64,000 bases of DNA from the IMG/VR virus record IMGVR_UViG_3300035703_000008, positions 124,001 to 188,000 of that record; one strand, given 5' to 3'. Positions 5,488 to 41,724 of this stretch are shown piece after piece. A program made the position numbers and the translations under genes. Numbering within the stretch: position 1 is the stretch's first letter; the number at the start of each line of letters is the position of its first letter. Below the pieces are notes generated by a model, which saw nothing but the letters and a program-made list of their open reading frames with translations, did no database searches and was not told the origin of the DNA.

Positions 5488-8400
5488 CAATACTCACCTG
5501 TCTGGCTGATGGTGCTGCTGACCCCACCATTGGAGGCCATGGTGGCTGGATAAAGTCCCGACACCGGTGTCTGGCTGCGTATGTTGCTCTGGGTAAGGGC
5601 TTCGATCACTTCCACGTCATTGACCGTGGCCGCTGAAACAAAAATCTCGTTGGGAGCGGACCTCACTTCATAAAGGTCGCCAAAGGTCTTGAGCGGATTC
5701 AGAGGAACCAACACCACCGAGCTCACTATAGATCCCATGCGTTCGTGTAGATAGGCCGCCAGCTCTGAAAAGAAAAAGCTGTCACCAAAGTCCCATTTGT
5801 CAATGGTGAAGTAGTTGTTGACATTGGCTATGACCTGGCTCTTGATCTCGCTGATGCTGGCCGTGCTGCGTGCAGCACGCACCACTTTGATGGTGGCTCT
5901 TAATTCGGGCGCAGCCTTGGCACCAAACAAGGGCTTGAACACCACAGAATTCAACACCACATTGTCGGATATCATCTTGTAGTCATTGAGTCCTGAATAG
6001 GCCGTGGTCAGCTCGTCGATGGTAGGGATCTCGGGTTCGGGTACCGTGCCCGTGGTATCTTTGATGTAGTTCTGATAGGCCGTGTAGTATTCTTGTACCA
6101 CCACATAGAGATCGATGATGTTGGTGGTGCCTGGATCGATCACATTGGTGAGAGCCGAATTGTGACGATACTGATAGTAGAGATCCTGGCGACCAGTGCG
6201 AGCTATAAAGTCAAACCGTTCGGTAAGCACACGCTGGATGTTGCCATTGGTCTGTGTCACTGTGAGCTCGTAGAATTTCTGTGTTTGGTAAGCATAAAAA
6301 ACTTGGCCGTTCACGTATTCGCTCTTGACTAGCTCGATGGCATCCAAGGTGGCATAGATGGCATTGATCACGCCCGCGGCCAGGGGCAAGAATCTCTCGA
6401 GGTCATCAAAGTCAGTGAGCTGCTGGAAAAATACCAGCTTGGTAGTAGCTGCCACATTGGGTGCCACGATATCATCAAAGAAATCCGGATCATCGGCAAC
6501 ACCGTCGGCATCCGAGTCGAGATAGCTGACCACCACTTGATAGTCATTGACGAATCCGTCACTTTCCACGGGCTGACCAATGATGTCCATGGTCACGTCA
6601 CTGTTGAGCGGCAAATTGCTGTCGGGTCTACTGTTGCTCTTGAGTATGCGCACAAAGTCATTGATCACAAGACCGGTCTTGGGGTCATAGATCTTTTCGC
6701 CACCACCAAAGAAGAATCTGGTTTCGATCACAGATGCGAAGAGATAATCCAGCCCGCGTGACACCACAGTGTAAGATTCACCGTTGGTGGTAAACTGTAT
6801 CAGCCAGGATGCATCGAGATTGAGTCCGGGATTGGCCAGGGCCGTGCCATGACTGGAATAACTGAAAGCAGCATCGGCTGCGAGATTGGTACTGGTGATG
6901 AGATACCAAGTGGCTGTGAGATTGTCGTAGCCTAGTCCAAAGTTGCGGAACAGTTCAATCTGTTGCAGCATGCTCTGTTCAAGGCTGGAAGGCAGATCGT
7001 CCACAAACTTGGCGATCACTTGCACAGCTCGTGCTCCAGTGGGCACAAAATTATTGATAGTGACCGGTCCAGTGCCGTCAGAGAGATTGCCTTGCCCGTT
7101 GTTGGTGCCATCGCCCACCACCGACATCGTGGTGGCCCAGATCACTAGTTTTTCATCGGCACGAGTGGGTGTACCTGCCACCAAGCGATTGTTGGCATCA
7201 AAAAAGTAGCCCGTGGGCGGAACAAATTTGACCAATGCACCTTGCTGTATGTACTTGGCATTGTTGGTAGTGAACGAACCAATGGGCTGTGGAATATTAA
7301 GGCTGTTCTGGAAATAGCCGGTGGTCTCATTGACCATAGTGGTGCTCTGCCGCCAGCTGAGATTGAGCACTGTGAGATCAGGCCTGGGAAAGTTGTAGCG
7401 AGTGGGGTCAACTGAGTTCCTGCCATAATAAAACTGGATCATGCTGCGACTGGAAAGCACCGGCTCGATGTTGTTGTTGATCACGTCCACGATGTCGTTG
7501 CGATTGATCCAATCAAATTGGAAATTGGGCAACACATTCTGGCGATATAGCACTCCGTCACTGCCAAAGATATTGGTAGACGAATATTTGCCGGTGATGT
7601 CTGTGAGATCTACATAACGTGTGGTTCCCACTGAGCTACGGGCAACAGCTTTGCTCTTGATGATCGAGTTGTAACGAGTGAACGGAAAGTTGTTGTAGTC
7701 TTCACCGTTGACCATGCGATTCTGTGTGTAATAACGAGCCGGGGCACGCTGCTTGATCTCGTCAATGGTCTCGCGAGCCTGTGCGTTCGAAACCGGAGTG
7801 GTGATACCGCAAGTGAATGTGATGGTTTCGAGTCGTCCAAAGCGGCTCACATAAGTGAGAGCGATAGGCACACTCTGCATCTCTTCGGGGTTGATGATGT
7901 ACTCAAGCCCGTTGCTGGCACGCACATAGGCACGGAAAAAGCCCACGGGCACTTCGGCAAAAACACCATCACCGAATGTCAGCGTGATCTGATCGTTGGC
8001 ACGGCTGGTTATGGAATAGAGCTGACGCTGATCGGGAGCCAGTTGCTCGACTGCGCCCGCATACACGCTCTCTACATATTGCCATTCTCCGGCGATGCTG
8101 CCCACATCATCGAGCTTGTAGAGCCAATGATCTTGATCGTTACAACCTTCCACATTGATGTTCACTGTGCGGTTGGGCACAGCTTCGCTGAGGTTGAAGT
8201 CTTGATTCTGCAGCACCCCTTGCTTGAACAAGAAAAAGAATCCAGTGTTGTCGCTGCCAAACCCCAACTGATCGTTGCGATAGAGCATGTTGAATGCGCC
8301 GGATGGTCGCGGTGCTGGTTCGTACACATAATCACGACCTTGCGTGGTACTGCTCACAGCTTCAAATGGCATGTTCACACCATCCACTGCGGCTGTGTAC

Positions 8401-8999
8401 GGAGTCACGGGCAAGAATCCCGGCACGAGATTTACTGTATACTCGTCGGTGCGTATGCCAAGTATGGTGGCTGAATTGGCAGGTCTACCAAACTTCTGGC
8501 TGTCAACCAAAGCAGCATTGACCACTGTGGTAAACTGCTCGAACCAGTTGGGATTAGTAGGATCATTCCAGTCAATGGTGACATTGCTGAGGCTCACACC
8601 GTTGTAGTCCACGACATTTTCTGTGGTAGAAACTGAAAATACCTTGAGAAATCCTTGTGCAGCTTGGTTGCGCTTGGGAGTATAGCTGACAAGATTGGCC
8701 AGGCGCACCACGCTGTCTCTGCGTTCGGCTGTGTCGAGATAGTTTTCCCTGGCATTGAGATCGTTGCGGAAAGCCATGGCCTGGCCCATGAAAGCGATCA
8801 CGTCCAGGAGGGCGATAAACTCTGAACTTTCGATGTAGTCGTTGAAAGTTTCGGGATAATAAAGTCGGAGATAGTCTACGAAGCTCTTGCGCAGAGTCTC
8901 GAAATCGTAGCTCTGGAAGTCGGCTTCACGGTAGGTCTGGTACAGCCTTTTCCAGTCCTCTACCCCAAATATAGCGGTTTGTCTAGTAGTCTTGGCCAT
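5487..8999 (-). CDS. Baseplate wedge subunit, T4 gp6-like
   Basis: 1170 aa; N-terminal YDFETLRKSFVDYL..FNDYIESSE..LLDVIA..ARENYLDTAERRDSV..LA..VSY.P and ETIDEIKQRAP..Y.TQNRMV..EDY motifs typical of gp6/baseplate J. Confidence 0.85.
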   Translation of the reverse strand: MAKTTRQTAIFGVEDWKRLYQTYREADFQSYDFETLRKSFVDYLRLYYPETFNDYIESSEFIALLDVIAFMGQAMAFRNDLNARENYLDTAERRDSVVRLANLVSYTPKRNQAAQGFLKVFSVSTTENVVDYNGVSLSNVTIDWNDPTNPNWFEQFTTVVNAALVDSQKFGRPANSATILGIRTDEYTVNLVPGFLPVTPYTAAVDGVNMPFEAVSSTTQGRDYVYEPAPRPSGAFNMLYRNDQLGFGSDNTGFFFLFKQGVLQNQDFNLSEAVPNRTVNINVEGCNDQDHWLYKLDDVGSIAGEWQYVESVYAGAVEQLAPDQRQLYSITSRANDQITLTFGDGVFAEVPVGFFRAYVRASNGLEYIINPEEMQSVPIALTYVSRFGRLETITFTCGITTPVSNAQARETIDEIKQRAPARYYTQNRMVNGEDYNNFPFTRYNSIIKSKAVARSSVGTTRYVDLTDITGKYSSTNIFGSDGVLYRQNVLPNFQFDWINRNDIVDVINNNIEPVLSSRSMIQFYYGRNSVDPTRYNFPRPDLTVLNLSWRQSTTMVNETTGYFQNSLNIPQPIGSFTTNNAKYIQQGALVKFVPPTGYFFDANNRLVAGTPTRADEKLVIWATTMSVVGDGTNNGQGNLSDGTGPVTINNFVPTGARAVQVIAKFVDDLPSSLEQSMLQQIELFRNFGLGYDNLTATWYLITSTNLAADAAFSYSSHGTALANPGLNLDASWLIQFTTNGESYTVVSRGLDYLFASVIETRFFFGGGEKIYDPKTGLVINDFVRILKSNSRPDSNLPLNSDVTMDIIGQPVESDGFVNDYQVVVSYLDSDADGVADDPDFFDDIVAPNVAATTKLVFFQQLTDFDDLERFLPLAAGVINAIYATLDAIELVKSEYVNGQVFYAYQTQKFYELTVTQTNGNIQRVLTERFDFIARTGRQDLYYQYRHNSALTNVIDPGTTNIIDLYVVVQEYYTAYQNYIKDTTGTVPEPEIPTIDELTTAYSGLNDYKMISDNVVLNSVVFKPLFGAKAAPELRATIKVVRAARSTASISEIKSQVIANVNNYFTIDKWDFGDSFFFSELAAYLHERMGSIVSSVVLVPLNPLKTFGDLYEVRSAPNEIFVSAATVNDVEVIEALTQSNIRSQTPVSGLYPATMASNGGVSSTISQTGEY

Positions 9000-18066: not shown

Positions 18067-18954
18067 TTGAGCACAACACCACCGCGAGTAAACTATCTCA
18101 ACAACCGTGATCTCCTCAAAGAGATCCATCTCAGCAAAAATACCTATTGCACATTCCGAGATCCCGTAACTGATCATCAATACGACATAATCTTGCCCTC
18201 GGTCACCAAGATCAACCAAAGAACCATAGCCGAGGCACGGAGGAATCGCGCAGCGCGACTTGCCCGAGAAAGTGGTGAAGAGGTCAACGAAAAACGCATC
18301 CCGCACACCGATCTTGTTTTCCGTGTCATGACCTGGGAACACATACCCCAGGCACCCAAGAAACAGCCCAAAACACAGGCCAAAAAGAAAAAGCTCGAAG
18401 ATATCCTAGGCTTTGAAGAGCTGCCCGACGAGGATCCCTTGGCAGATCTCGTCGAAGATATCGTCATCGATACCACTCATGTGCGTGTAAATTTCCCACC
18501 GTTTTGGCATTACCGACTCGACGAAGAAAAAACACCATTTGTGGTAGGCAAAAGCCATTGGCGCGGCGATCTCAGCACTGGGGAGTATTCCAGAGAGCAC
18601 GGTGAAATGACACGCAAACTGGCCATGATGTTCATGAAGCTGTGCGAACGCTATGCCACTCGATCAAACTGGCGCGGCTATACCTACAACGAAGAGATGC
18701 GTGGGCAAGCTCTGCTACAACTCAGCCAGATCGGTCTGCAGTTTGACGAATCAAAGAGCCAAAATCCCTTTGCCTACTACACCGCAGCCATTACCAACTC
18801 GTTTACACGGGTGCTCAACATCGAAAAGAAAAACCAAAATATCAGGGACGACATCTTGGAAATGAACGGACTCAATCCTTCGTGGACTCGTCAGTATGCC
18901 AATGCTGACCGTGGCATGATGAGTGGCCCTGTGACCATCGGTTCTGACGAGTGA
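18067..18954 (+). CDS. Late-transcription sigma factor, T4 gp55-like
   Basis: NYLNNRDLL, RSNWRGYTYNEEM, FDESKSQNPFAYYT....NSF.R.L..EKK motifs; upstream of gp47/gp46 as in T4. Confidence 0.9.
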   Translation: MSTTPPRVNYLNNRDLLKEIHLSKNTYCTFRDPVTDHQYDIILPSVTKINQRTIAEARRNRAARLARESGEEVNEKRIPHTDLVFRVMTWEHIPQAPKKQPKTQAKKKKLEDILGFEELPDEDPLADLVEDIVIDTTHVRVNFPPFWHYRLDEEKTPFVVGKSHWRGDLSTGEYSREHGEMTRKLAMMFMKLCERYATRSNWRGYTYNEEMRGQALLQLSQIGLQFDESKSQNPFAYYTAAITNSFTRVLNIEKKNQNIRDDILEMNGLNPSWTRQYANADRGMMSGPVTIGSDE

Positions 18955-18958
18955 TTAC

Positions 18959-19858
18959 ATGACAACTCTGTTGCATATCACACATCCTGCATTAGATTTA
19001 CAGACAATAGATCCAAGATCGACTTTGATTTCTGGTAGATTGCCTGAAAAACTACCTGATGTCGCACACACATCCCTAGGAGATTTACATGCCGGTGATA
19101 TCATTGATCTAGCCGCTAAATATCACGAATTACAATTTCACGATCAGTTTTTTGATATTGATAGCGATATCTTTCAAGAAACGCAGTTATTATTAAACTT
19201 TTTACAACATCGCAATATAATAAAAAACTTTAAAAAACCTAGTCCTGTTGAATTTTATCAAAATACCGGATACCATCACAAAGATCCTTGTTTATGGGTA
19301 TTTGGGTGTAGTCATTCATACGGGGTTGGGTTAGAACCATTGCAACGATACGGCCAATTACTGGCCGATCGTCTAGGTCTACCATTAATATTAGTTGCTG
19401 AGCCCGGTTCGTCTCTGACTTGGAGTCTAGATCAAATACATCGGTCCGATATCAAAGAATCCGACCTTGTAATTTGGCAGATTACTACCCCTTATAGAAA
19501 ATTAAAGTTTGATGTATCTCCTAAACATGTGATGCTGTCTAGTCGTGCCAGTCATTGTTATCTAGAAGTATTCACGAATCAACAAGTATTTTTTGATCAT
19601 GTGAGTATGATAAGGCAAGGTATTAACTACCTAAGATCAAAACATATTAGATTTGCAATGACATCGTTGGATAGTAAAGATTACTATTATCAGTACTTAA
19701 AAGAGTATACTCGATACCCAGAGTATTGTTATACACCAGAAATATGGAAAGATCGAGCCAGCGATGGTCTTCACCCAGGTCCTTTGAGTAATTCCGCACT
19801 TGCAGATCGTTTGTTTATTCATCTACAATTAGATATTCATACCAAAACAACAACATGA
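18959..19858 (+). CDS. Hypothetical protein with SGNH/GDSL-like domain
   Basis: VFGCSHSYGVG, A.PGSS, terminal DGLHPG; visibly AT-richer than flanks. Confidence 0.6.
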   Translation: MTTLLHITHPALDLQTIDPRSTLISGRLPEKLPDVAHTSLGDLHAGDIIDLAAKYHELQFHDQFFDIDSDIFQETQLLLNFLQHRNIIKNFKKPSPVEFYQNTGYHHKDPCLWVFGCSHSYGVGLEPLQRYGQLLADRLGLPLILVAEPGSSLTWSLDQIHRSDIKESDLVIWQITTPYRKLKFDVSPKHVMLSSRASHCYLEVFTNQQVFFDHVSMIRQGINYLRSKHIRFAMTSLDSKDYYYQYLKEYTRYPEYCYTPEIWKDRASDGLHPGPLSNSALADRLFIHLQLDIHTKTTT

Positions 19859-20871
19859 GCAACCTTTTCCGCAAAGCCATAGTATTCACCGACATCCATT
19901 TTGGGCTCAAATCCAACAGCTTGATACACAATCAAGACTGTGAACGTTTTGTGGACTGGATCATCGCCACAGGCCGGGAGCATGGTTGCGAGACCGGCAT
20001 GTTCCTGGGCGACTGGCACCATCATCGTGCATCGATCAATCTACAGACCCTGAACTTCAGTTTGCAGGCCTTGGAAAAGCTGAGTGCGGCGTTCTCGCAG
20101 TTCTTCTTTATCCCAGGCAATCACGATCTCTACTATCGTGACAAACGTGACATCCATGGTGCAGCCTGGGCCCGTCACTTGCCCAATATCCACGTATGCA
20201 ACGACTGGTTCCAGGAAGGCGATGTCATAATCGCCCCGTGGCTAGTGGGCGATGACCATAAAAAGATTTCGAAGATGTCGGCCAAGTACATGTTTGGACA
20301 CTTTGAGCTACCGCACTTCAAGATGAATGCCATGGTAGAGATGCCGGACCACGGTGAGATACAAGCCGAGCACTTTGGACACTATGACCAAGTGTTTAGT
20401 GGACACTTCCACTTGCGCCAGCACAAAAACAACATCAACTACATCGGCAATGCTTTTCCGCACAACTTCGCCGATGCCGGGGACAGCCAGCGCGGTGCTA
20501 TGATCCTCGAGTGGGGGGCGGAACCGGAGTATCACGCCTGGCCGGACCAACCTCTCTACAATGTCTGGGATCTTAGCCATGTCATTGACAATGCTGAGAA
20601 AATTTTACGCCCGAACATGCATGTCCGAGTACAGCTAGACATCGATATCAGCTACGAAGAAGCCAACTTTATTCGAGAAACATTTGTGCAAAAATATACT
20701 CTGCGAGAGATGGCTTTGATCCCAAACAAGAGATCGGCCCTGGAAGAAGACATGGCACCCGGCGATGTAAAATTTGAATCAGTAGATCAAATCGTTATAG
20801 ATCAGATCACCAAGATTGAAAGCGAATTCTACGATCCTAAATTATTACTACAAATTTACAATACGCTATGA
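19855..20871 (+). CDS. Recombination endonuclease subunit, gp47/Mre11/SbcD-like
   Basis: Metallophosphoesterase motifs DIHFG, GDWHH, GNHD, GHFE, SGHFH. Confidence 0.92.
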   Translation: MSNLFRKAIVFTDIHFGLKSNSLIHNQDCERFVDWIIATGREHGCETGMFLGDWHHHRASINLQTLNFSLQALEKLSAAFSQFFFIPGNHDLYYRDKRDIHGAAWARHLPNIHVCNDWFQEGDVIIAPWLVGDDHKKISKMSAKYMFGHFELPHFKMNAMVEMPDHGEIQAEHFGHYDQVFSGHFHLRQHKNNINYIGNAFPHNFADAGDSQRGAMILEWGAEPEYHAWPDQPLYNVWDLSHVIDNAEKILRPNMHVRVQLDIDISYEEANFIRETFVQKYTLREMALIPNKRSALEEDMAPGDVKFESVDQIVIDQITKIESEFYDPKLLLQIYNTL

Positions 20872-22259
20872 TAGAAATCAAAGATCAAAATGTAGTCATA
20901 GCAGCCATGCCATTGATCGACAGCATGCACGCACCAATGGCGGCACCAGCTGTGCTGAAAGCATCTCTATCTCGTGCCGGCATCAAGTCTACAGCGTTAG
21001 ATCTAAATATTGAAGTATTAGTCAAAGTCCGATCCCACCATGAAGAAAAAGCCATTAGAAAATTCTTCAACAAACAGGAAGCAGAGGACTGGATAGTACA
21101 CGAAATATCCAAGATATTGTTATATTGTGCCAATCGAATTACTGCATTGAAACCCACAGTGATTGCATTGAGTTTGTTGACATTCCAGGCTCAAAATTTT
21201 ACTTTATGGTTATGCCTTTTGTTGCGCCAACTTTGCCCGGATGCAAGAATAGTAATCGGCGGCCCTGGAATAAAAAACCTAGTGGCTAACTTTGATGATA
21301 AGTTCCGAGATCTAGCATTGGAAAAAGGATTGATCGATCATTATATCACCGGAGATGGCGATCAAGCATTGATAGAATATGTAAAAGGCAATTATGACTT
21401 TCCCGGTATCAACACAGACCATTGGGAACCAGTCAAAGATTTAGATTCGTTACCGTATCCAGATTGGTCCGATTATAATTTTTATCTTTATTCGCAAACC
21501 TACATGCCTTTGGTTGATGCCAAAGGCTGCGTGAGAAACTGTGAATTTTGTGATATCATTGAGTTTTGGGAAAAATTCCAGGCTAGAAAAGCTGAAAATA
21601 TTTTCAAAGAAATGTTACATCAGATATCTCAATACGGCTATCGAGATTTTGATTTCAGAAGTAGTTTATCAAACGGCAATCTCAAAGAGTTCAAAAAATT
21701 GCTATCTCTGATGTATGAGTATAATCTATCTAAACCTTACAGACCAGAACAGATTAGCTGGAATGCATCATTTATAGTCAGACAAAAGAGTCAACACCCA
21801 GAATCGATGTGGCAACAAATGGGAGCTACTCATGCTACATTGAGTCTAGGCGTAGAAAGTGTGGTGCCTCACATCAGGCAGGATCTGGGTAAACACTTTG
21901 AAAACGAAGACATCGACTGGCACCTTGAAATGGCTAAAAAATACAATGTCAAGATTATCATGATGATCATCACCGGCTATCCAACTGAAACAAGAGAAGA
22001 TTGGGAATTTACCAAGCAATGGTTCAGAGATCGAGCTCAATATAAAGATATCATGACACGTCTTTTTTTGACCCCGGCTGGCATTTTACCCGGAACTGGC
22101 TTGCATAGGAATTCTGAATCGCATGGTATTATATGGATCGGGAAACCCAATATTGGAAATTGGCAAACTAAAAATATAGGCCGCGAAGAAAGACTAGAGT
22201 ATCATTCAGAATTGGTTTTATTGTGCAAAGATCTAGGATTCAATCTCGATGCTTACTAA
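20868..22259 (+). CDS. Cobalamin-binding radical SAM protein
   Basis: N-terminal B12-binding-like domain (IVIGGP, GDGD), KGCVRNCEFC CxxxCxxC, GVES, ITGYPTETREDW. Confidence 0.85.
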   Translation: MIEIKDQNVVIAAMPLIDSMHAPMAAPAVLKASLSRAGIKSTALDLNIEVLVKVRSHHEEKAIRKFFNKQEAEDWIVHEISKILLYCANRITALKPTVIALSLLTFQAQNFTLWLCLLLRQLCPDARIVIGGPGIKNLVANFDDKFRDLALEKGLIDHYITGDGDQALIEYVKGNYDFPGINTDHWEPVKDLDSLPYPDWSDYNFYLYSQTYMPLVDAKGCVRNCEFCDIIEFWEKFQARKAENIFKEMLHQISQYGYRDFDFRSSLSNGNLKEFKKLLSLMYEYNLSKPYRPEQISWNASFIVRQKSQHPESMWQQMGATHATLSLGVESVVPHIRQDLGKHFENEDIDWHLEMAKKYNVKIIMMIITGYPTETREDWEFTKQWFRDRAQYKDIMTRLFLTPAGILPGTGLHRNSESHGIIWIGKPNIGNWQTKNIGREERLEYHSELVLLCKDLGFNLDAY

Positions 22260-22653
22260 TAATCTGACATTGACGTTCTGTTCCGAGAAGCGGTCTCATG
22301 ATCTAGCTATAACGCTGAAAGATCGGAATAATACAATAATCAATACGATTACATTTGAAGACGATACAAAGAAATCAACAACATTCGATTTATCGTTTCC
22401 TAATACATTGAAAATCAAACTAACAAATGCCGCAGATGGTAATTTTTCAGTGCATCTCGAAAGTGTGAAATTATCTGGATTATACCTGACAGATCAAATC
22501 CTTGATCAGATATGTCATGTACACTTTCTGGATTCAGATACCACATTGGTATCGCGGACATGGAATCAGTCTGGCGTAATATCGATTGACTTCTTTGCGG
22601 CTGATTGGATACAATATCATTTACTATACGGAAACAAGATTACTAAGTCATGA
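22249..22653 (+). CDS. Hypothetical protein
   Basis: 134 aa, overlaps both neighbours, AT-rich like the radical SAM gene. Confidence 0.6.
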   Translation: MLTNNLTLTFCSEKRSHDLAITLKDRNNTIINTITFEDDTKKSTTFDLSFPNTLKIKLTNAADGNFSVHLESVKLSGLYLTDQILDQICHVHFLDSDTTLVSRTWNQSGVISIDFFAADWIQYHLLYGNKITKS

Positions 22654-24413
22654 TCCAGATCAAAGACCTTACAGTCAAAAACTTTATGAGCGTAGGCAAT
22701 GCCACACAGGCCGTCAACTTTGATCGAAAAGATCTCACCTTGGTACTGGGCGAAAACTTGGATCTCGGTGGCGATGGTAGCAGGAACGGCACGGGCAAAA
22801 CCACAATCATCAATGCTCTTTCGTATGCCCTATACGGACAAGCCTTGACTAACATCCGACGAGATAATCTCATCAACAAGACCAATGGCAAAAACATGTT
22901 GGTGAGTTTGGACTTCTCTGTGAACAGTCAGGACTATCGTGTGGAACGAGGCCGTAAGCCAAACATCCTCAAATTTTATGTCAATTCAGAAGAAAAACAA
23001 GCGTCCGACGACAGCCAAGGTGACAGTCGTGAAACACAGGATGCCATAGAATCTGTGCTGGGTATGACGCACGATATGTTCCGGCATATCTTGGCCCTCA
23101 ATACCTACACTGAACCATTCCTAAGCCTCAAGGCCAATGACCAGCGTGCCATCATCGAGCAACTGCTAGGTATCACGCTACTAAGTGAGCGTGCCGAAAA
23201 GATCAAAGAACTCAATCGTGCCACCCGAGATGCCATCGCACAAGAAGAATTCCGTATCCGTGCTGTGCAGGAAGCCAATGTCAGGATCGAAGAGCAGATC
23301 GTTAGTCTAGAAAAGCGCCGTGACCTTTGGCTACGGAAACAACGAGAAGATTGTGCCAATCTAGAATCAGCTATATCCGCGCTGGAGCACATCGATATCG
23401 AAGCCGAAGTACAGGCACACCGAGATTTAGAACTGTTCCACAGTCGCAAGAAACAGATCGACGAGCATCAGAAGTGGGTGCGACAAATCGATCTCGACGA
23501 CGCCAAGCTAGAAAAAGATCAAGCCAAGCTACAGCGAGACATTGATGCGCTGCGAGAACATCGTTGCCATGCCTGTGGACAAGAATTGCACGATAGCAAG
23601 CAAGACGAAATCCTGGCCGAGAAACAAAAGAACTTGCAAGAGATCGTGCTGCAACTCTTGGCCAACAGCACCCAGAGGATCGAACATCTCAACGAGATCA
23701 GCGACCTTGGCGAACTTGGTGCAGCACCGCAGGTATTCTACGACGATCTTGAACAAGCACTGGGGCATAAAAACAGCATCGATGGCCTGCGTCGAGATCT
23801 TGCTAATCGACAGGCCGAAACTGATCCATACACCGAACAAATCGCCGACATGCGCGGTCAAGCCTTGCAAGAGGTCACTTATGACACACTCAATGAACTC
23901 ACAAGGGTACAGGAACACCAAGACTTCTTGCTCAAGCTCTTGACCAACAAGGATTCGTTTGTACGCAAGAAGATCATTGATCAGAATCTTTCTTATCTCA
24001 ATGCCCGACTCACTCACTATCTAGATCGGATCGGTCTTCCGCACCAAGTGGCTTTCCAAAACGATCTCTCCGTGGAAATCACTGAACTGGGCAGGGATCT
24101 AGACTTTGACAACCTCAGTCGTGGCGAGCGTAACCGTCTCATACTCTCCATGTCATGGGCATTCCGAGATGTTTGGGAAAGCCTGTATTCGCCCATCAAT
24201 GTACTGTTCATCGACGAACTCATCGATTCGGGCATGGACACAGCCGGCATGGAATCCAGCCTAGCTCTTTTGAAGAAGATGAGCCGAGAAAGAAACAAAA
24301 GCATTTGGCTGGTGAGCCATCGCGACGAGTTGGCTGGGCGTGTAGGTAACATCCTGCGCGTGGTCAAAGAAAACGGTTTTACTTCCTATAACATAGACGT
24401 GGACATCGCATGA
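22650..24413 (+). CDS. Recombination ATPase subunit, gp46/Rad50/SbcC-like
   Basis: Walker A NGTGKTT, zinc hook CHAC, signature LSRGE, Walker B LFIDE, SH motif. Confidence 0.93.
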   Translation: MIQIKDLTVKNFMSVGNATQAVNFDRKDLTLVLGENLDLGGDGSRNGTGKTTIINALSYALYGQALTNIRRDNLINKTNGKNMLVSLDFSVNSQDYRVERGRKPNILKFYVNSEEKQASDDSQGDSRETQDAIESVLGMTHDMFRHILALNTYTEPFLSLKANDQRAIIEQLLGITLLSERAEKIKELNRATRDAIAQEEFRIRAVQEANVRIEEQIVSLEKRRDLWLRKQREDCANLESAISALEHIDIEAEVQAHRDLELFHSRKKQIDEHQKWVRQIDLDDAKLEKDQAKLQRDIDALREHRCHACGQELHDSKQDEILAEKQKNLQEIVLQLLANSTQRIEHLNEISDLGELGAAPQVFYDDLEQALGHKNSIDGLRRDLANRQAETDPYTEQIADMRGQALQEVTYDTLNELTRVQEHQDFLLKLLTNKDSFVRKKIIDQNLSYLNARLTHYLDRIGLPHQVAFQNDLSVEITELGRDLDFDNLSRGERNRLILSMSWAFRDVWESLYSPINVLFIDELIDSGMDTAGMESSLALLKKMSRERNKSIWLVSHRDELAGRVGNILRVVKENGFTSYNIDVDIA

Positions 24414-24973
24414 AATACATGATCACCGGTGGTAACTCAGGGCTAGGAGCCATACTATGTCAACGATTCGATGGCGACAGTTACAGTCGAGTCAATGGTT
24501 ACGACATCGGCAAAGACTATCACAAACTCGCTGGCATCAGCATGGACTACGATGTGTTCATCAACAATGCCTATGACGGAGTACTAGGCGAGAGCTGGCA
24601 TGGTGTTGGTCAGACACGCTTGCTACACGAAGTGGCCATGACATGGCAATGCCACAACAAAACCGGATTCATCATCAACATTGGTGGAGTAGGCAGTGAG
24701 GATTTGTCAGCACCGTTTCCTGGGTGGGAAAGCTATAATTCCAATAAACGAGCTCTCAAACACATGAGCTTACAGTGGACCCAGGCATTTAAAAACTCCC
24801 AAGTCAAGTTCCGCACGAGCTTGCTAACTATAGATCGACTGGATAAAAACAGCATCAACGACGGACACGATCTCAACAACATCGCTGATATGATTGAATT
24901 GTGTCTGAACGTTCGTGCCAACACCTGCATCGGAGAAATCAAGGCGTGGGTTAATTTGGATCATAAACAGTAA
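24410..24973 (+). CDS. Short-chain dehydrogenase/reductase-like protein
   Basis: ITGGNSGLG, DVFINNA, IINIG, YxxxK (YNSNK). Confidence 0.8.
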   Translation: MKYMITGGNSGLGAILCQRFDGDSYSRVNGYDIGKDYHKLAGISMDYDVFINNAYDGVLGESWHGVGQTRLLHEVAMTWQCHNKTGFIINIGGVGSEDLSAPFPGWESYNSNKRALKHMSLQWTQAFKNSQVKFRTSLLTIDRLDKNSINDGHDLNNIADMIELCLNVRANTCIGEIKAWVNLDHKQ

Positions 24974-24988
24974 TATCAACGCAACAAT

Positions 24989-25507
24989 ATGCCATCACCA
25001 AGCAAAGCCAAAGGCAACTCGTTTGAACGACAAACTGCAGATTTTCTCACCAATCTCTACGGCGAAAAGTTCATGCGGGTGCCGGGCAGCGGTGCGTACA
25101 TTGGTGGCAAAAACACACACCGCAAGCAGTTCCTACACGAAGGCCAGATACGCAGTTTCAAAGGGGATATCATCCCCGGCGAAAGTTTTCCGCGTTTCAA
25201 TGCCGAGTGCAAATCCTACAAAGACTTTCCTTTCCATCAACTTTTTTCTGGCTCAGTTAAGATCCTGGACTCATGGATTGATCAATGCGTGGATGTCGCC
25301 GACGACGGTGACTTCAACATCATATTCATGAAGTTCAACAGAAAAGGCACCTTCGTAGCCGTTCAGGCCCAGCCCAACACTTCCCAACTAATTTTTACTC
25401 GGCATTTCAACTACACTTCCGGGCTTCGCGGACATTGGATGATCATGGATCATGACATGTTCTGGGAGCTCAACTCTGACACAGTCAAGGCAATCTGCAA
25501 GGCATAA
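24989..25507 (+). CDS. Holliday junction resolvase-like PD-(D/E)xK nuclease
   Basis: SKAKGNSFER...RVPGSGA...GDII...ECK pattern of Hjc-like resolvases. Confidence 0.75.
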   Translation: MPSPSKAKGNSFERQTADFLTNLYGEKFMRVPGSGAYIGGKNTHRKQFLHEGQIRSFKGDIIPGESFPRFNAECKSYKDFPFHQLFSGSVKILDSWIDQCVDVADDGDFNIIFMKFNRKGTFVAVQAQPNTSQLIFTRHFNYTSGLRGHWMIMDHDMFWELNSDTVKAICKA

Positions 25508-25509
25508 CA

Positions 25510-25964
25510 GGCAGTAAGGGCTCGCACAGGCCGATTTCTTGTGCCCTAGACCTGGACTTCGAGTCGCAGGGATGGAAGACCCACCGCGCCAGTGGGCACT
25601 CAACCACTACCCGCAAGGATGAAGATGGCAAAGACCTGCCGTTTGGTTGTTTGAACAGGATATAAAAGGCCCAATGAGGGGAGCAAAACCCCAGGCACAT
25701 GCGTGGTGACGGCGTACTACACATGTGTTGCCGTTGTGATAAGACGGAGTGAGCAGGTACCGGACAACCGCCTGCTTGGAACAAGTGCGTTCCGTAGCTC
25801 TAACGCTGTGTGACTGTGCAACTCGGATGATACCAGTTTTTTCTTAGCCCTTTGCTGGGCTAAGTGTGACCGCTTAATCTGGATGATACTGATATCTCGC
25901 TTGCGCTCGAAATAAATCAGTGATGAGCGCAAGCGAAATCACTAGAACTGCGCAGCAGTTCTCT
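25510..25964 (+). ncRNA. Candidate large structured non-coding RNA (~455 nt), family not recognised
   Basis: Largest intergenic gap in a tightly packed genome; about 14 consecutive stems with G-U pairs on the + strand, a GCAA tetraloop and a duplicated hairpin module. Confidence 0.7.
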
Positions 25965-25970
25965 TAAATA
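25965..25970 (+). promoter_or_regulatory. Late promoter TAAATA, 6 nt before ATG
   Basis: TAAATA-GATCCT-ATG, no SD. Confidence 0.65.
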
Positions 25971-25976
25971 GATCCT

Positions 25977-27230
25977 ATGAACGTTGACAAAAGCACTTTC
26001 TGTGCTGCTCCTTGGTTCCAAATCAAAAATACCACGCTTGGAAGTTACTGTAGCTGTTGCGAGATAGACCACGACAAAAGCACTTTCTCGGGCAACAAAG
26101 ATTTCGCTTGGCCCACGCATCTACCATCGCACTGGAACAACAGCGATTATGCTCGATACCTTAGGTCTGAGCTCACCAATGGTGTGCGTCTCCCCGAATG
26201 TCACAAGTGTTGGAGCAAAGAAGATGCTGGACAACAAAGTCTTCGACAAACTATCAATGACACCGTGGCTGGCAATCGACCTTTTGAATCTAGTTGGATG
26301 CAATCCTACTTTAGAAAAAAGCAAGATTACGAACATGATTTACTTTTGGCTGCCGATGTACAGGTCACCAATCTTTGCAACTTTGGCTGTGTGATGTGTG
26401 AGCCGGGTAGCAGCAGCCATCTCTATCGAAGATGGCGGAGAGATCAGGACCATCCGTTGATAAAAAAACAGTTGATGATCTTCCCCAACGGCTATCTTGA
26501 TCAGGTGAAAGAAACATACATCAACAGAAACAACTACGAGCTACTGCAACACGTGATAGATCAATCTCCGCGGTACTTGAAGATCATAGGCGGTGAGCCT
26601 TTGTTGGATCAGCAGTTGATGTCTGTGTTGTGCAATCAGCTTCCCGAAGTCAAATCAAAAATCAAACTTTACATCACTACCAATGGGAGCCAAGATCTCT
26701 GCCACGCACAACAACGGTTGTCGGGTTACCAGGAAATTTTTTGGGTAGTCAGTCTAGAGTCCACGGGCAAACTGCAGGACTATGTGAGAAAAGGCAGCGT
26801 ATGGTCCGAGATCGAGCACAACATTGACAGGTTTGTAAGCGAACACAGCAGTCAACACCTTTACATAGCCTATGTGATACAGAGTCTCACATTGGCTGGG
26901 CTGCCAACATTGTTGGAATGGGCCCAGCAACGCAACATTCCAGTGGCTACCAGTTTGCTGGCCAAACCTGAATTCATGGATGTTAGATCGTTGCCCACGG
27001 AGATGAAATCAAAGTTGATTGATCAATTGTCGCAGGCAACAAAGTATTCGATACCGCTGGAGATACAAAATCCAGCATCTGTCAATATTGCAGGGTTGTG
27101 CGAGCTCATCGGGCGCACCCAGTACGATAGATCTGCCATGTTGGATCTACGAGAGTGGTTGGATTGGTACGATCCCGACCAGCAATGGCGAGACATCATT
27201 CCCGAGTGGGCACCATATTTCTCGGAGTAA
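25977..27230 (+). CDS. Radical SAM protein with N-terminal SPASM/twitch-like Cys cluster
   Basis: FCAAPW..CSCC..ECHKCW..E, NLCNFGCVMC, GGEP, TTNG. Confidence 0.85.
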   Translation: MNVDKSTFCAAPWFQIKNTTLGSYCSCCEIDHDKSTFSGNKDFAWPTHLPSHWNNSDYARYLRSELTNGVRLPECHKCWSKEDAGQQSLRQTINDTVAGNRPFESSWMQSYFRKKQDYEHDLLLAADVQVTNLCNFGCVMCEPGSSSHLYRRWRRDQDHPLIKKQLMIFPNGYLDQVKETYINRNNYELLQHVIDQSPRYLKIIGGEPLLDQQLMSVLCNQLPEVKSKIKLYITTNGSQDLCHAQQRLSGYQEIFWVVSLESTGKLQDYVRKGSVWSEIEHNIDRFVSEHSSQHLYIAYVIQSLTLAGLPTLLEWAQQRNIPVATSLLAKPEFMDVRSLPTEMKSKLIDQLSQATKYSIPLEIQNPASVNIAGLCELIGRTQYDRSAMLDLREWLDWYDPDQQWRDIIPEWAPYFSE

Positions 27231-27755
27231 TCAGTCATAGTCAACGAGACTGACCAGCGCGATACCTTGCTCGGTGACACGGCGTCGACCAGGCAAGAAA
27301 TCTAGATTGGCGATCACGCCGGCTGCGAGATGATCCACGGCAAAGTGTTGTCTCAAGATTGATGCCACAGCCAGCACGGTACCGCCAGTGGCGATCACGT
27401 CATCGACGATGAAAGGACGATCGCCGATCTGCGCTGATTGTTGAATTTCAATGGTGTCTGAGCTGTATTCAGTGTCGTAATCGGCTGAATATACAGCTCC
27501 GGGTAACTTGCCTTTTTTGCGAGCCAGCACCAAGGGAAATCCGTGTGTGCGTGCCAGGATAGCACCCATGACGAACCCACGGCTTTCAACAGCCACGATG
27601 CTGGTAGCACGATGTGCTTTCACATATTTTGACATCTCGGTGCAGCAATGATCCAGCACATGTGGCGTGTTGAACACTTGATTGAGATCGAGGAAATCAA
27701 CACCTTTTTTTGGCCAGTCTTTTACTGTGAGTATGTTGTCTCTGATGTTGATCAT
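27231..27755 (-). CDS. apt: Adenine phosphoribosyltransferase
   Basis: DWPKKGVDFLD, ESRGF, ARKKGKLPG, EYS, PRPP-binding IVDDVIATGGT; start placed at the ATG overlapping the upstream stop. Confidence 0.9.
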   Translation of the reverse strand: MINIRDNILTVKDWPKKGVDFLDLNQVFNTPHVLDHCCTEMSKYVKAHRATSIVAVESRGFVMGAILARTHGFPLVLARKKGKLPGAVYSADYDTEYSSDTIEIQQSAQIGDRPFIVDDVIATGGTVLAVASILRQHFAVDHLAAGVIANLDFLPGRRRVTEQGIALVSLVDYD

Positions 27756-28084
27756 AGTTGGTCGGGCCAATCTCTGAAAAGTGCATGCTGGATGTCACCG
27801 GCAACAAACTGGTTGAAACTTTTGTGTTTGGTCTCGAGCTCGCCTTCTTGTGGCACCACTCTGCGGAAAGCATCATCCATTTGGGCCATGTTTTTGAACT
27901 CCATGAGGATCATCCATTCGGGCATGTCTGCGATTGAGCGGAAGCCCATCTTGCAGCGTGTGATACGATAACTTTCCATCCGTCCTTCAGAGACCAAATG
28001 ATCAAAGAAACTACGCATGCCGTTGACCCAGTCCAGGTCAGATATGTCGCCTTCTTTGTTGGCCCATATAGTGTAAAGATCCAT
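27752..28084 (-). CDS. DUF6614-like small ferredoxin-fold protein
   Basis: MDLYTIW..., YRITRCKMGF, EW.I.MEF..MAQMDDAF, ALFRDWPD pattern recalled from DUF6614 proteins. Confidence 0.55.
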   Translation of the reverse strand: MDLYTIWANKEGDISDLDWVNGMRSFFDHLVSEGRMESYRITRCKMGFRSIADMPEWMILMEFKNMAQMDDAFRRVVPQEGELETKHKSFNQFVAGDIQHALFRDWPDQL

Positions 28085-41072: not shown

Positions 41073-41208
41073 AAAAATATTTATTCCTGGATTATTTTTC
41101 GTAAATCTATGTTAAATACTATCAACGTATTCTGCGTTTTATGCGGCGATTAATACCCACCGCGTACCGGATAGAACCCGGATCGGACTTCTTTTAAGGA
41201 GAAAACAA

Positions 41209-41724
41209 ATGGGACGTCCTCTCAAGATCAAGAAAACTACAACCAAAGATGTTGGTTTTAACAGCTTTGACCAGCTAGAAAACCCAGTTTACCCGGCCAC
41301 TCTCAACACTACCCAGTTCTTGGGTGTAGTAGGTGGCGCCAACGCTTCTGTGGCCACTACCAGCTATCCAGTGGTCAAGTGCCAGGTTTTTGGCGCCGGC
41401 GAAAGCGCCGAAGAAGCAGGCTACATCATCCGCCAAAAAGGTTCTACCACATATCTGGTGTATGGTCAGACTTCGGGCAACACCTTCCAGTGCATCTTGG
41501 CCAATCAAGCCACTGGAAACCTCACAGCCGGCAACATGAACATCGCTATTTTTGCCGGCGACAGTTCTGATATCCTTGTCAAGAAGCTCACAAACAAATG
41601 GGCCTTAGACTACAGCGACAATCGTTATGTGATCAACTTCTTCAGCGACGAAGGAACTGAGATCAAATCGGGAACACGCGGCAACACCAACCCCCTCGCG
41701 ATCACAGAAAACTATACTTCTTAA
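41209..41724 (+). CDS. Virion structural protein (head decoration-like candidate)
   Basis: MGRPLKIKK start, GYIIRQKG...YLV; strong TAAGGAG SD; TAAATA 41113-41118. Confidence 0.6.
   Translation: MGRPLKIKKTTTKDVGFNSFDQLENPVYPATLNTTQFLGVVGGANASVATTSYPVVKCQVFGAGESAEEAGYIIRQKGSTTYLVYGQTSGNTFQCILANQATGNLTAGNMNIAIFAGDSSDILVKKLTNKWALDYSDNRYVINFFSDEGTEIKSGTRGNTNPLAITENYTS

Follow-up and report, generated by a model that had tools for sequence, protein, structure and literature searches.

What is encoded in a 469-nt gap without genes, in a phage whose neighbouring genes mostly overlap or abut? The gap lies at 25508-25976 of the 64,000-nt stretch analysed here (hereafter the window; all coordinates refer to it), which comprises positions 124,001 to 188,000 of the 209-kb uncultured viral contig IMGVR_UViG_3300035703_000008. 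The initial annotation, made from sequence alone, had noted that the gap lacks a credible ORF and is tiled with stems, and had read it as a large, ornate non-coding RNA of a T4-like phage, transcribed at the end of a gp55-47-46-resolvase operon and not assignable to a known class. We find that the observation was sound: the gap holds a folded RNA of roughly 450 nt encoded on the + strand. The interpretation was only partly supported, since the strand, the size, the context and most of the structure were right, whilst the first third does belong to a catalogued family.

The genomic setting was confirmed. The phage is T4-like, with genes for a gp55-like late sigma factor (18067-18954), gp47/SbcD (19855-20871), gp46/SbcC (22650-24413), a portal protein, a major head protein and a baseplate hub. 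A PDDEXK_15 / RusA-like nuclease gene ends at 25507 and the next gene, encoding a radical-SAM enzyme, starts at 25977. The intervening sequence holds only short, unconserved ORFs, and across 39 non-redundant relatives the longest stop-free run falls to 22 codons on the + strand and 29 on the - strand. A small protein-coding region is therefore very unlikely, as indels are not in multiples of three and there is no conserved open frame.

Is the RNA of a known class? A comparison with the Rfam covariance models, one of the checks named in advance, assigned 25519-25652 (+) to Polynucleobacter-1 RNA (RF01718), with 118.4 bits against a gathering score of 37, an E value of 4e-25 and coverage of model positions 1-141 of 141. 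The consensus helices of the family, three hairpins and a multi-stem junction holding two hairpins, are all formed with no non-canonical pair flagged, and they correspond to the 5′ stems proposed in the initial annotation (25524-30/25538-44, 25551-58/25562-70, 25580-84/25592-96 and the junction closed by 25601-06/25644-49 with its two inner hairpins). No other family passed its threshold in the gap. At E<=10 the one other match was a chance-level snoRNA hit, and there was no match to GOLLD, ROOL, HEARO, OLE, raiA, RNase P, tmRNA or introns; ARAGORN detected no tRNA or tmRNA gene in the window.

In the literature searched, the only paper to name the Polynucleobacter-1 motif is its original description (Weinberg et al. 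2010, PMC2864571). Its supplement places the motif, from freshwater samples, mostly downstream of genes of family GOS11034, possibly related to the cyanophage P-SSM2 gene PSSM2_218, and states that it was found in no sequenced phage and that its 3′ half is not always detected. In the present phage the motif lies 12 nt downstream of the PDDEXK_15 / RusA-like nuclease gene, which may or may not belong to that family.

The remaining ~310 nt have no Rfam match, yet this part is conserved in more than 150 uncultured phage contigs and is more widespread than the known part. Of 80 loci fetched through the upstream nuclease gene, 62 share sequence with the gap, but only 20 do so over its full length; the others share only the part from about 25650-25710 onward. 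An nhmmer search and a covariance model together found this body in 58 of the 80 loci, always on the + strand and once per locus. Seventeen loci with the body alone hold no Rfam family at all, and instead of Polynucleobacter-1 they carry a different conserved 5′ domain of about 170 nt, with its own covarying hairpins, starting right after the upstream stop codon. A pattern built only on the two 3′ hairpins found at least 120 viral contigs, and a covariance model of the core (R1) found the core 110-230 nt upstream, on the same strand, in 79 of 100 of these loci. About a third of 151 elements have the Polynucleobacter-1 domain. In species-representative genomes the core pattern hit only 12 contigs, all from freshwater MAGs binned to unrelated taxa and most likely phage contigs; R1 confirmed 11 of them, and Polynucleobacter-1 lies 35-40 nt upstream of the core in 7. 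BLASTN of the gap against about 50,000 cultured phage genomes gave no match, and the upstream nuclease has only relatives below 47% identity, in jumbo phages, so no cultured model phage was found.

The element can be divided as follows, where H denotes a hairpin, PK a pseudoknot and P-x a helix enclosing two hairpins.
25519-25652 (+), 5′ domain, the Polynucleobacter-1 motif: three hairpins plus the junction closed by 25601-06/25644-49.
25653-25692 (+), linker with the conserved AAGGCNAAWGA, then hairpin H-a (25678-81/25689-92).
25694-25729 (+), hairpin H-b (outer stem 25694-701/25722-29, inner stem 25703-08/25715-20), whose loop is the 5′ strand of PK1.
25709-25715 (+), 5′ strand of PK1 (ACGGCGU), pairing with 25803-25809.
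25733-25737 (+), 5′ strand of PK2 (GUUGU), pairing with 25764-25768 (ACAAC) in the loop of H-c.
25746-25750 (+), 5′ strand of P-x (GGAGU), pairing with 25797-25801 and enclosing H-c and H-d.
25753-25775 (+), hairpin H-c (25753-58/25770-75) with the conserved loop UACCGGACAACCG.
25778-25793 (+), variable hairpin H-d (25778-82/25789-93), absent or much enlarged in some relatives.
25797-25809 (+), 3′ strand of P-x (25797-801), UA, then the 3′ strand of PK1 (25803-09).
25813-25837 (+), hairpin A, a short stem (25813-16/25834-37, 25818/25833) closing the conserved loop AACUC plus box A (the 7-mer GGAUGAU, 25825-31).
25843-25864 (+), hairpin H-e (25843-50/25857-64), 8-12 bp and G+C rich.
25876-25889 (+), single-stranded box B: AAUCU, the 7-mer GGAUGAU (25881-87, identical to box A) and AC.
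25890-25918 (+), A-rich variable spacer, 11-334 nt long among the elements.
25919-25943 (+), hairpin H-f: a 6-bp stem, an invariant tandem G-A/G-A internal loop, a 2-bp GC stem and a GNNA loop.
25944-25962 (+), hairpin H-g: an AGA...UCU base, 8 bp and a GNA triloop, marking the 3′ end of the conserved element; in many relatives a convergent - strand ORF ends right after it.

The evidence for this fold rests on covariation rather than energy. The folding energy of the whole gap exceeds that of shuffled sequences (z -3.6 on the + strand and -2.9 on the -), but the pseudoknotted core alone shows no such excess (z -0.2). We counted pairs on a model-based alignment of 58 hits (46 distinct), with both pseudoknots added by hand. 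For the proposed structure 80.5% of cells were paired, compared with 40-49% for slid controls; 404 cells carried a change on both sides, compared with 69-127; and the covariation score was 0.54, compared with about 0.13. An independent set chosen through the 3′ hairpins (70 distinct sequences) gave 82.1% against 39-45%, and 633 against 96-168. None of 500 shuffles reached the observed values. Plain alignment was not adequate for this purpose: RNAalifold on a MAFFT alignment recovered only 18 pairs, because stems were misaligned, and a covariance-model alignment was needed.

Across these two sets the inner stem of H-b was 95-96% paired and the outer stem 68-79%, every pair showing changes on both sides. 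PK1, which had been proposed in the initial annotation, was 84-85% paired with 7 of 7 pairs covarying. PK2, which had not, was 94-99% paired; the variants GUCAG/CUGAC and GUCG/CGAC keep the pairing, and the pair 25737:25764 is among the top mutual-information (MI) pairs, with an MI of 1.43 and 97% Watson-Crick. Neither pseudoknot was part of the search model, so their pairing is not fitted. P-x was 78-80% paired, with 5 of 5 pairs changed on both sides, and H-c 95-97%. For H-a, the nhmmer alignments show a stem whose sequence changes with pairing kept. H-d varies in length in two alignments of relatives, and its MI pairs 25779:25793 and 25780:25792 are 76-82% Watson-Crick. H-e was present in 38 of 38 per-sequence folds, with up to 5 pair types at a position. 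H-f was paired at stem positions in 39 of 39, with 3-5 pair types each; its inner G-C changes to A-U in 3, and MI links 25921-23 with 25939-41. H-g was paired in 38 of 39, with 3-5 pair types at fully paired positions, and holds the highest-MI pairs of the whole alignment, 98-100% Watson-Crick. Hairpin A is the weakest helix and only modestly supported: it was 44-49% paired in the alignments, although per-sequence folds show a stem in most relatives and its own flanks pair at -5.0 kcal/mol, compared with -3.9 +/- 0.14 kcal/mol for permuted flanks.

The initial claim that many G-U pairs occur only on the + strand also holds. U-G is read in 44 of 46 and 68 of 70 sequences; H-c holds an invariant U-G pair, and one pair of that hairpin reads A-U in 23-34 and G-U in 21-32. 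On the other strand these G-U pairs would be A-C mismatches, and the folded molecule is therefore the + strand, the sense of the operon. Of the stems first listed in the body, 25678-81/25689-92, 25694-708/25715-29, 25751-57/25771-77 (as 25753-58/25770-75), 25778-82/25789-93, 25843-50/25857-64 and 25944-51/25955-62 are each supported by compensatory changes. The stem 25731-35/25743-47 and an inner CGG/CCG stem within H-c are not supported, their bases serving PK2 and P-x.

Part of this body had been seen before. The discoverers' raw Stockholm file carries a ‘tail’ and a ‘tailpknot’ sub-family, and its covariation line marks helices after the 141-nt core, and a 7-bp pseudoknot, that correspond to H-a, H-b, P-x, H-c and PK1 (25678-25809); the tail and pseudoknot are shown there also for the Polynucleobacter chromosome. 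The flanking sequence in that file, for the Polynucleobacter chromosome (NC_009379.1: 2130672-2131206) and for lake metagenome scaffolds, visibly continues with hairpin A, H-e and box B, and for one scaffold also with H-f and H-g, but these were left unaligned and H-e was marked as a predicted terminator. Thus about 25519-25809 is the published motif with its tail. The last 160 nt (with hairpin A, H-e as part of the RNA, box B, H-f and H-g), PK2, the alternative 5′ domain, the identity of the two boxes, the finding that the tail is the more conserved part and the T4-like phage context are not in that description or in the Rfam model, which stops at 141 nt.

The location of the element would suit a cis-acting 3′-UTR and insulator, in which the hairpins end or buffer transcription between the convergent early (+) and late baseplate (-) gene blocks and protect the operon mRNA from 3′ exonucleases, with no function in trans. 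In most relatives the element fills the space from the stop codon of the last + strand gene to that of a convergent - strand ORF, the downstream - strand genes are late baseplate genes, H-e was called a terminator by the discoverers' software, and the A-rich spacer before H-f would read as a U-run after a hairpin on the - strand. However, a terminator scan found no site at H-e, H-f or H-g, H-g is followed by only 1-2 U, and the only + strand hit (25623-25644) lies inside the Polynucleobacter-1 domain, the count equalling the shuffle expectation. Two covarying pseudoknots, conserved loops and tandem G-A motifs are far more than termination or stability needs, and the G-A and GNNA features and the G-U pairs make sense only on the + strand. 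Nor does this reading explain the identity of the two boxes (below) or the presence of the same RNA in a bacterial chromosome, where its 5′ flank is conserved with two metagenome scaffolds. We consider a purely cis-acting role unlikely.

A second possibility is that two or more independent RNAs lie side by side, a Polynucleobacter-1 small RNA (25519-25652) ending at its terminal hairpin and UUUG(G/A)UUGUUUGAA, and a separate RNA covering 25665-25962. The body occurs without Polynucleobacter-1 in about two thirds of elements, the scan hit at 25623-25644 is followed by a U-rich tail, and no convincing covariation links the two parts. On the other hand, where both occur their spacing and orientation are constant, no promoter-like site was found between them, the discoverers aligned the tail as part of the motif, and the alternative 5′ domain also abuts the body directly, which fits swappable domains of one RNA, as described for GOLLD. 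A single RNA is thus probable, and the two-RNA reading unlikely.

An unexpected feature is that the two 7-nt boxes are kept identical to each other. Box A follows ACUC in the loop of hairpin A and box B follows AUCU in the single-stranded stretch after H-e, and in nearly all of ~150 elements the two are the same sequence, although that sequence differs between elements. Within the common type R-G-A-U-R-A-W nine haplotypes occur, each matched in both boxes. Position 1 reads AA in 75, GG in 55 and is mismatched in 5; position 5 reads GG in 106 and AA in 26; position 7 reads UU in 80 and AA in 37. Unrelated alleles (ACAUGAW, GUCGGAA, GCCACAG, GACGAA, and AGCGAAA in the Polynucleobacter copy) are also shared by both boxes, and these identity pairs rank among the strongest MI pairs of the alignment. 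On a tree built without the box columns, position 1 changes 28 times; in 13 independent pairs on supported branches box B followed box A in about 12 and never went the other way (p about 5e-4), and position 5 followed in 6 of 6. Positions 1, 5 and 7 inside one box occur in almost all combinations whilst the boxes, 56 nt apart, stay matched, so linkage, target-site duplication or an old duplication cannot explain the identity.

No complementary partner for the boxes was found within the RNA or in the 1.8 kb upstream, the 9-mer has no reverse complement in the 64-kb window, and the fetched loci, of up to about 15 kb each, showed no clear excess of the own reverse complement (about 2 sd). Two direct repeats with identical variable cores 56 bp apart resemble sites that must match for site-specific recombination, and both strands fold better than shuffles, so a DNA-level element, such as recombination sites or the iterons of an origin, was considered. 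Against this, there are hundreds of compensatory changes with many G-U pairs on one strand only, box A sits in the loop of a hairpin, and the box 9-mer occurs nowhere else in the 64 kb; this reading is very unlikely.

Several other roles for the boxes were considered and rejected. Complementarity to tRNA anticodon loops is rejected by inference from the alleles, since the complement puts a pyrimidine at position 37 in most of them. Translational bypass with matching take-off and landing codons, as in T4 gene 60, is rejected as no reading frame enters the boxes and several alleles lack the stop codon. A rolling-circle template between the boxes does not fit their spacing of 49-59 nt, which is not a multiple of three. 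The commonest allele (R-GAUGA-W next to UGAC) reads like C and D boxes, but the matches to C/D families are at chance level (E 3.8-9.3; 12-14 bits against thresholds of 39-60), the Watson-Crick pairs that a kink-loop reading predicts next to the G-A pairs are absent, and several alleles lack GAUGA. Bacteria and phages are not known to have C/D RNPs. Box C/D guide RNAs with two guide units, and sponge or titrating RNAs such as CsrB/RsmZ, likewise carry repeated copies of one short exposed sequence, here one in a hairpin loop and one single-stranded; in CsrB-type RNAs the motif is constant, whereas here it varies between phages but stays matched within each RNA.

Might the conserved loops and boxes instead make contacts between copies of the RNA, in a self-assembling RNA-only particle? 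ROOL, often carried by phages or prophages, and OLE are large structured RNAs of unknown function that form homo-oligomers (PMC12286853), which suggests that ornate loops may serve assembly. GOLLD (RF01998) is large, ornate, lake-derived, carried by phages and of unknown function, with a conserved 3′ half and lineage-specific 5′ halves, as here; the 2010 supplement lists GOLLD-Strep5 and GOLLD-other5 alignments. In its commonest form box B contains the self-complementary AUCUAGAU / AUCUGGAU. However, the present RNA matches none of these families in sequence or structure, has different helices from GOLLD and is about half its size, and at about 450 nt is also smaller than ROOL. Kissing contacts predict complementarity or palindromes, not the identity of two boxes across alleles such as GCCACAG or GACGAA. 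An RNA particle of this kind is doubtful.

Our preferred explanation, which we hold as more likely than not as a whole, is that the gap encodes one multi-domain + strand RNA (25519-25962), an extended Polynucleobacter-1 RNA. The analysis itself establishes the structured + strand RNA and its membership or extension of Polynucleobacter-1, both of which we regard as all but certain, together with the fixed spacing of the far more widely conserved body, its compact core tied by two pseudoknots and P-x, its two stacked terminal hairpins, the interchangeable 5′ domains, the end point of the element where a convergent - strand gene ends in most relatives, and the matched boxes. It is by inference from sequence alone that the RNA would be made as the 3′ end of the early/middle recombination operon transcript, given that it starts 12 nt after the stop codon and no sigma-70-like promoter was found in 24900-26400, and that it would persist as a stable non-coding RNA. 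It is likewise an inference, and no more than a tentative one, that the fold is a scaffold presenting the boxes as twin recognition sites for one and the same partner, most simply a nucleic acid that base-pairs with both and co-varies with them. A bolder version, which is not excluded but appears unlikely, is a programmable recognition RNA displaying two copies of a freely evolvable specificity sequence of 7 nt or longer, which would base-pair twice with one co-evolving nucleic-acid target in the phage or its host (for example two sites of one RNA or DNA, or two copies of it). This would be a new class of phage guide, decoy or bridging RNA, with Polynucleobacter-1 as just one of its interchangeable 5′ modules.

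These results recast a 141-nt motif of unknown function, in Rfam since 2010 with no known phage host, as one optional 5′ module of a much larger, doubly pseudoknotted RNA that is common in uncultured freshwater T4-like phages, where it always sits at the end of the recombination-gene operon. Identity-type covariation is a rare kind of constraint and gives a concrete handle on function: whatever reads the boxes must read both, and its specificity must change with them. As a copy lies in the chromosome of Polynucleobacter sp. QLW-P1DMWA-1 (NC_009379.1), the question may be testable in a bacterium if that strain can be grown and manipulated.

Two local motifs outside the boxes were also examined. 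A late-promoter motif (TATAAATA) in the linker is not conserved among relatives, and a hammerhead reading of H-f (CUGAUGA...GAAA) is rejected because the first UGA is not conserved. Finally, the 12-bp stem 25897-908/25925-36 of the initial annotation is perfect in this sequence, the A-rich spacer here holding a segment complementary to the core of H-f, but this segment occurs in only 33 of 146 elements and the stem competes with the universally conserved H-f.

A second Rfam family was detected within the window, in addition to the Polynucleobacter-1 match, and the genes around the RNA include radical-SAM and phosphoribosyltransferase genes. These features are as follows:

41123-41211 (+), freshwater-2 RNA (RF02980), matched over its full length at 68.8 bits against a threshold of 49.9

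20868-22259, 25977-27230 (+) and 27231-27770 (-), two radical-SAM genes, one of them wedged between gp47 and gp46 and carrying a hint of a B12-binding domain, plus a phosphoribosyltransferase gene

In relatives the RNA abuts the convergent late genes, so that the stretch 25977-27770 looks like an insertion specific to this phage. The arrangement at the 3′ end of the element was seen in two of the fetched loci, L024 (4953-5171, minus strand) and L057 (4942-5160, minus strand), where a conserved ORF of 72 aa (MTL.DDEIGLLLEEYD...), lying upstream of a T4 baseplate gene, ends within a few bases of the last hairpin of the RNA, H-g. The conserved sequence found just after H-g is made up of the C-terminal codons of this ORF.

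At the 5′ end, loci without Polynucleobacter-1 carry a different conserved domain of about 170 nt, with covarying hairpins and the conserved stretches AGACUCUGUGC, CCCCAUUGAG and CUCUGUGAAAAAGAUACAAC, for which Rfam gave no match. This domain was observed in the fetched locus L011 at approximately 5548-5655, and also in L017, L005, L028, L057 and others. In L011, chance-level matches to C/D-box snoRNA models (12-14 bits, E 3.8-9.3) span the region from box A to box B, the two short boxes of the RNA, at 5782-5906 (+); the commonest box allele reads like a C box next to UGA(C).

In the fetched locus L058 a weak hit to the covariance model of the core (34.9 bits) was observed at 8320-8461 (+), about 3.8 kb downstream of the nuclease gene rather than next to it. 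On a further contig, L081, which belongs to a MAG, a tRNA gene lies 270 nt upstream of Polynucleobacter-1 (38-108 and 378-531), and the RNA therefore does not always follow the nuclease gene. L081 is one of the 12 hits obtained among genome contigs (L081-L092), all of which are freshwater MAG contigs binned to unrelated taxa, namely Methylococcaceae, Flavobacteriales, Haliscomenobacter and a ‘Bifidobacterium’ bin. Some of them are 148-228 kb long, and it is most likely that they are T4-like phage contigs mis-binned into MAGs.
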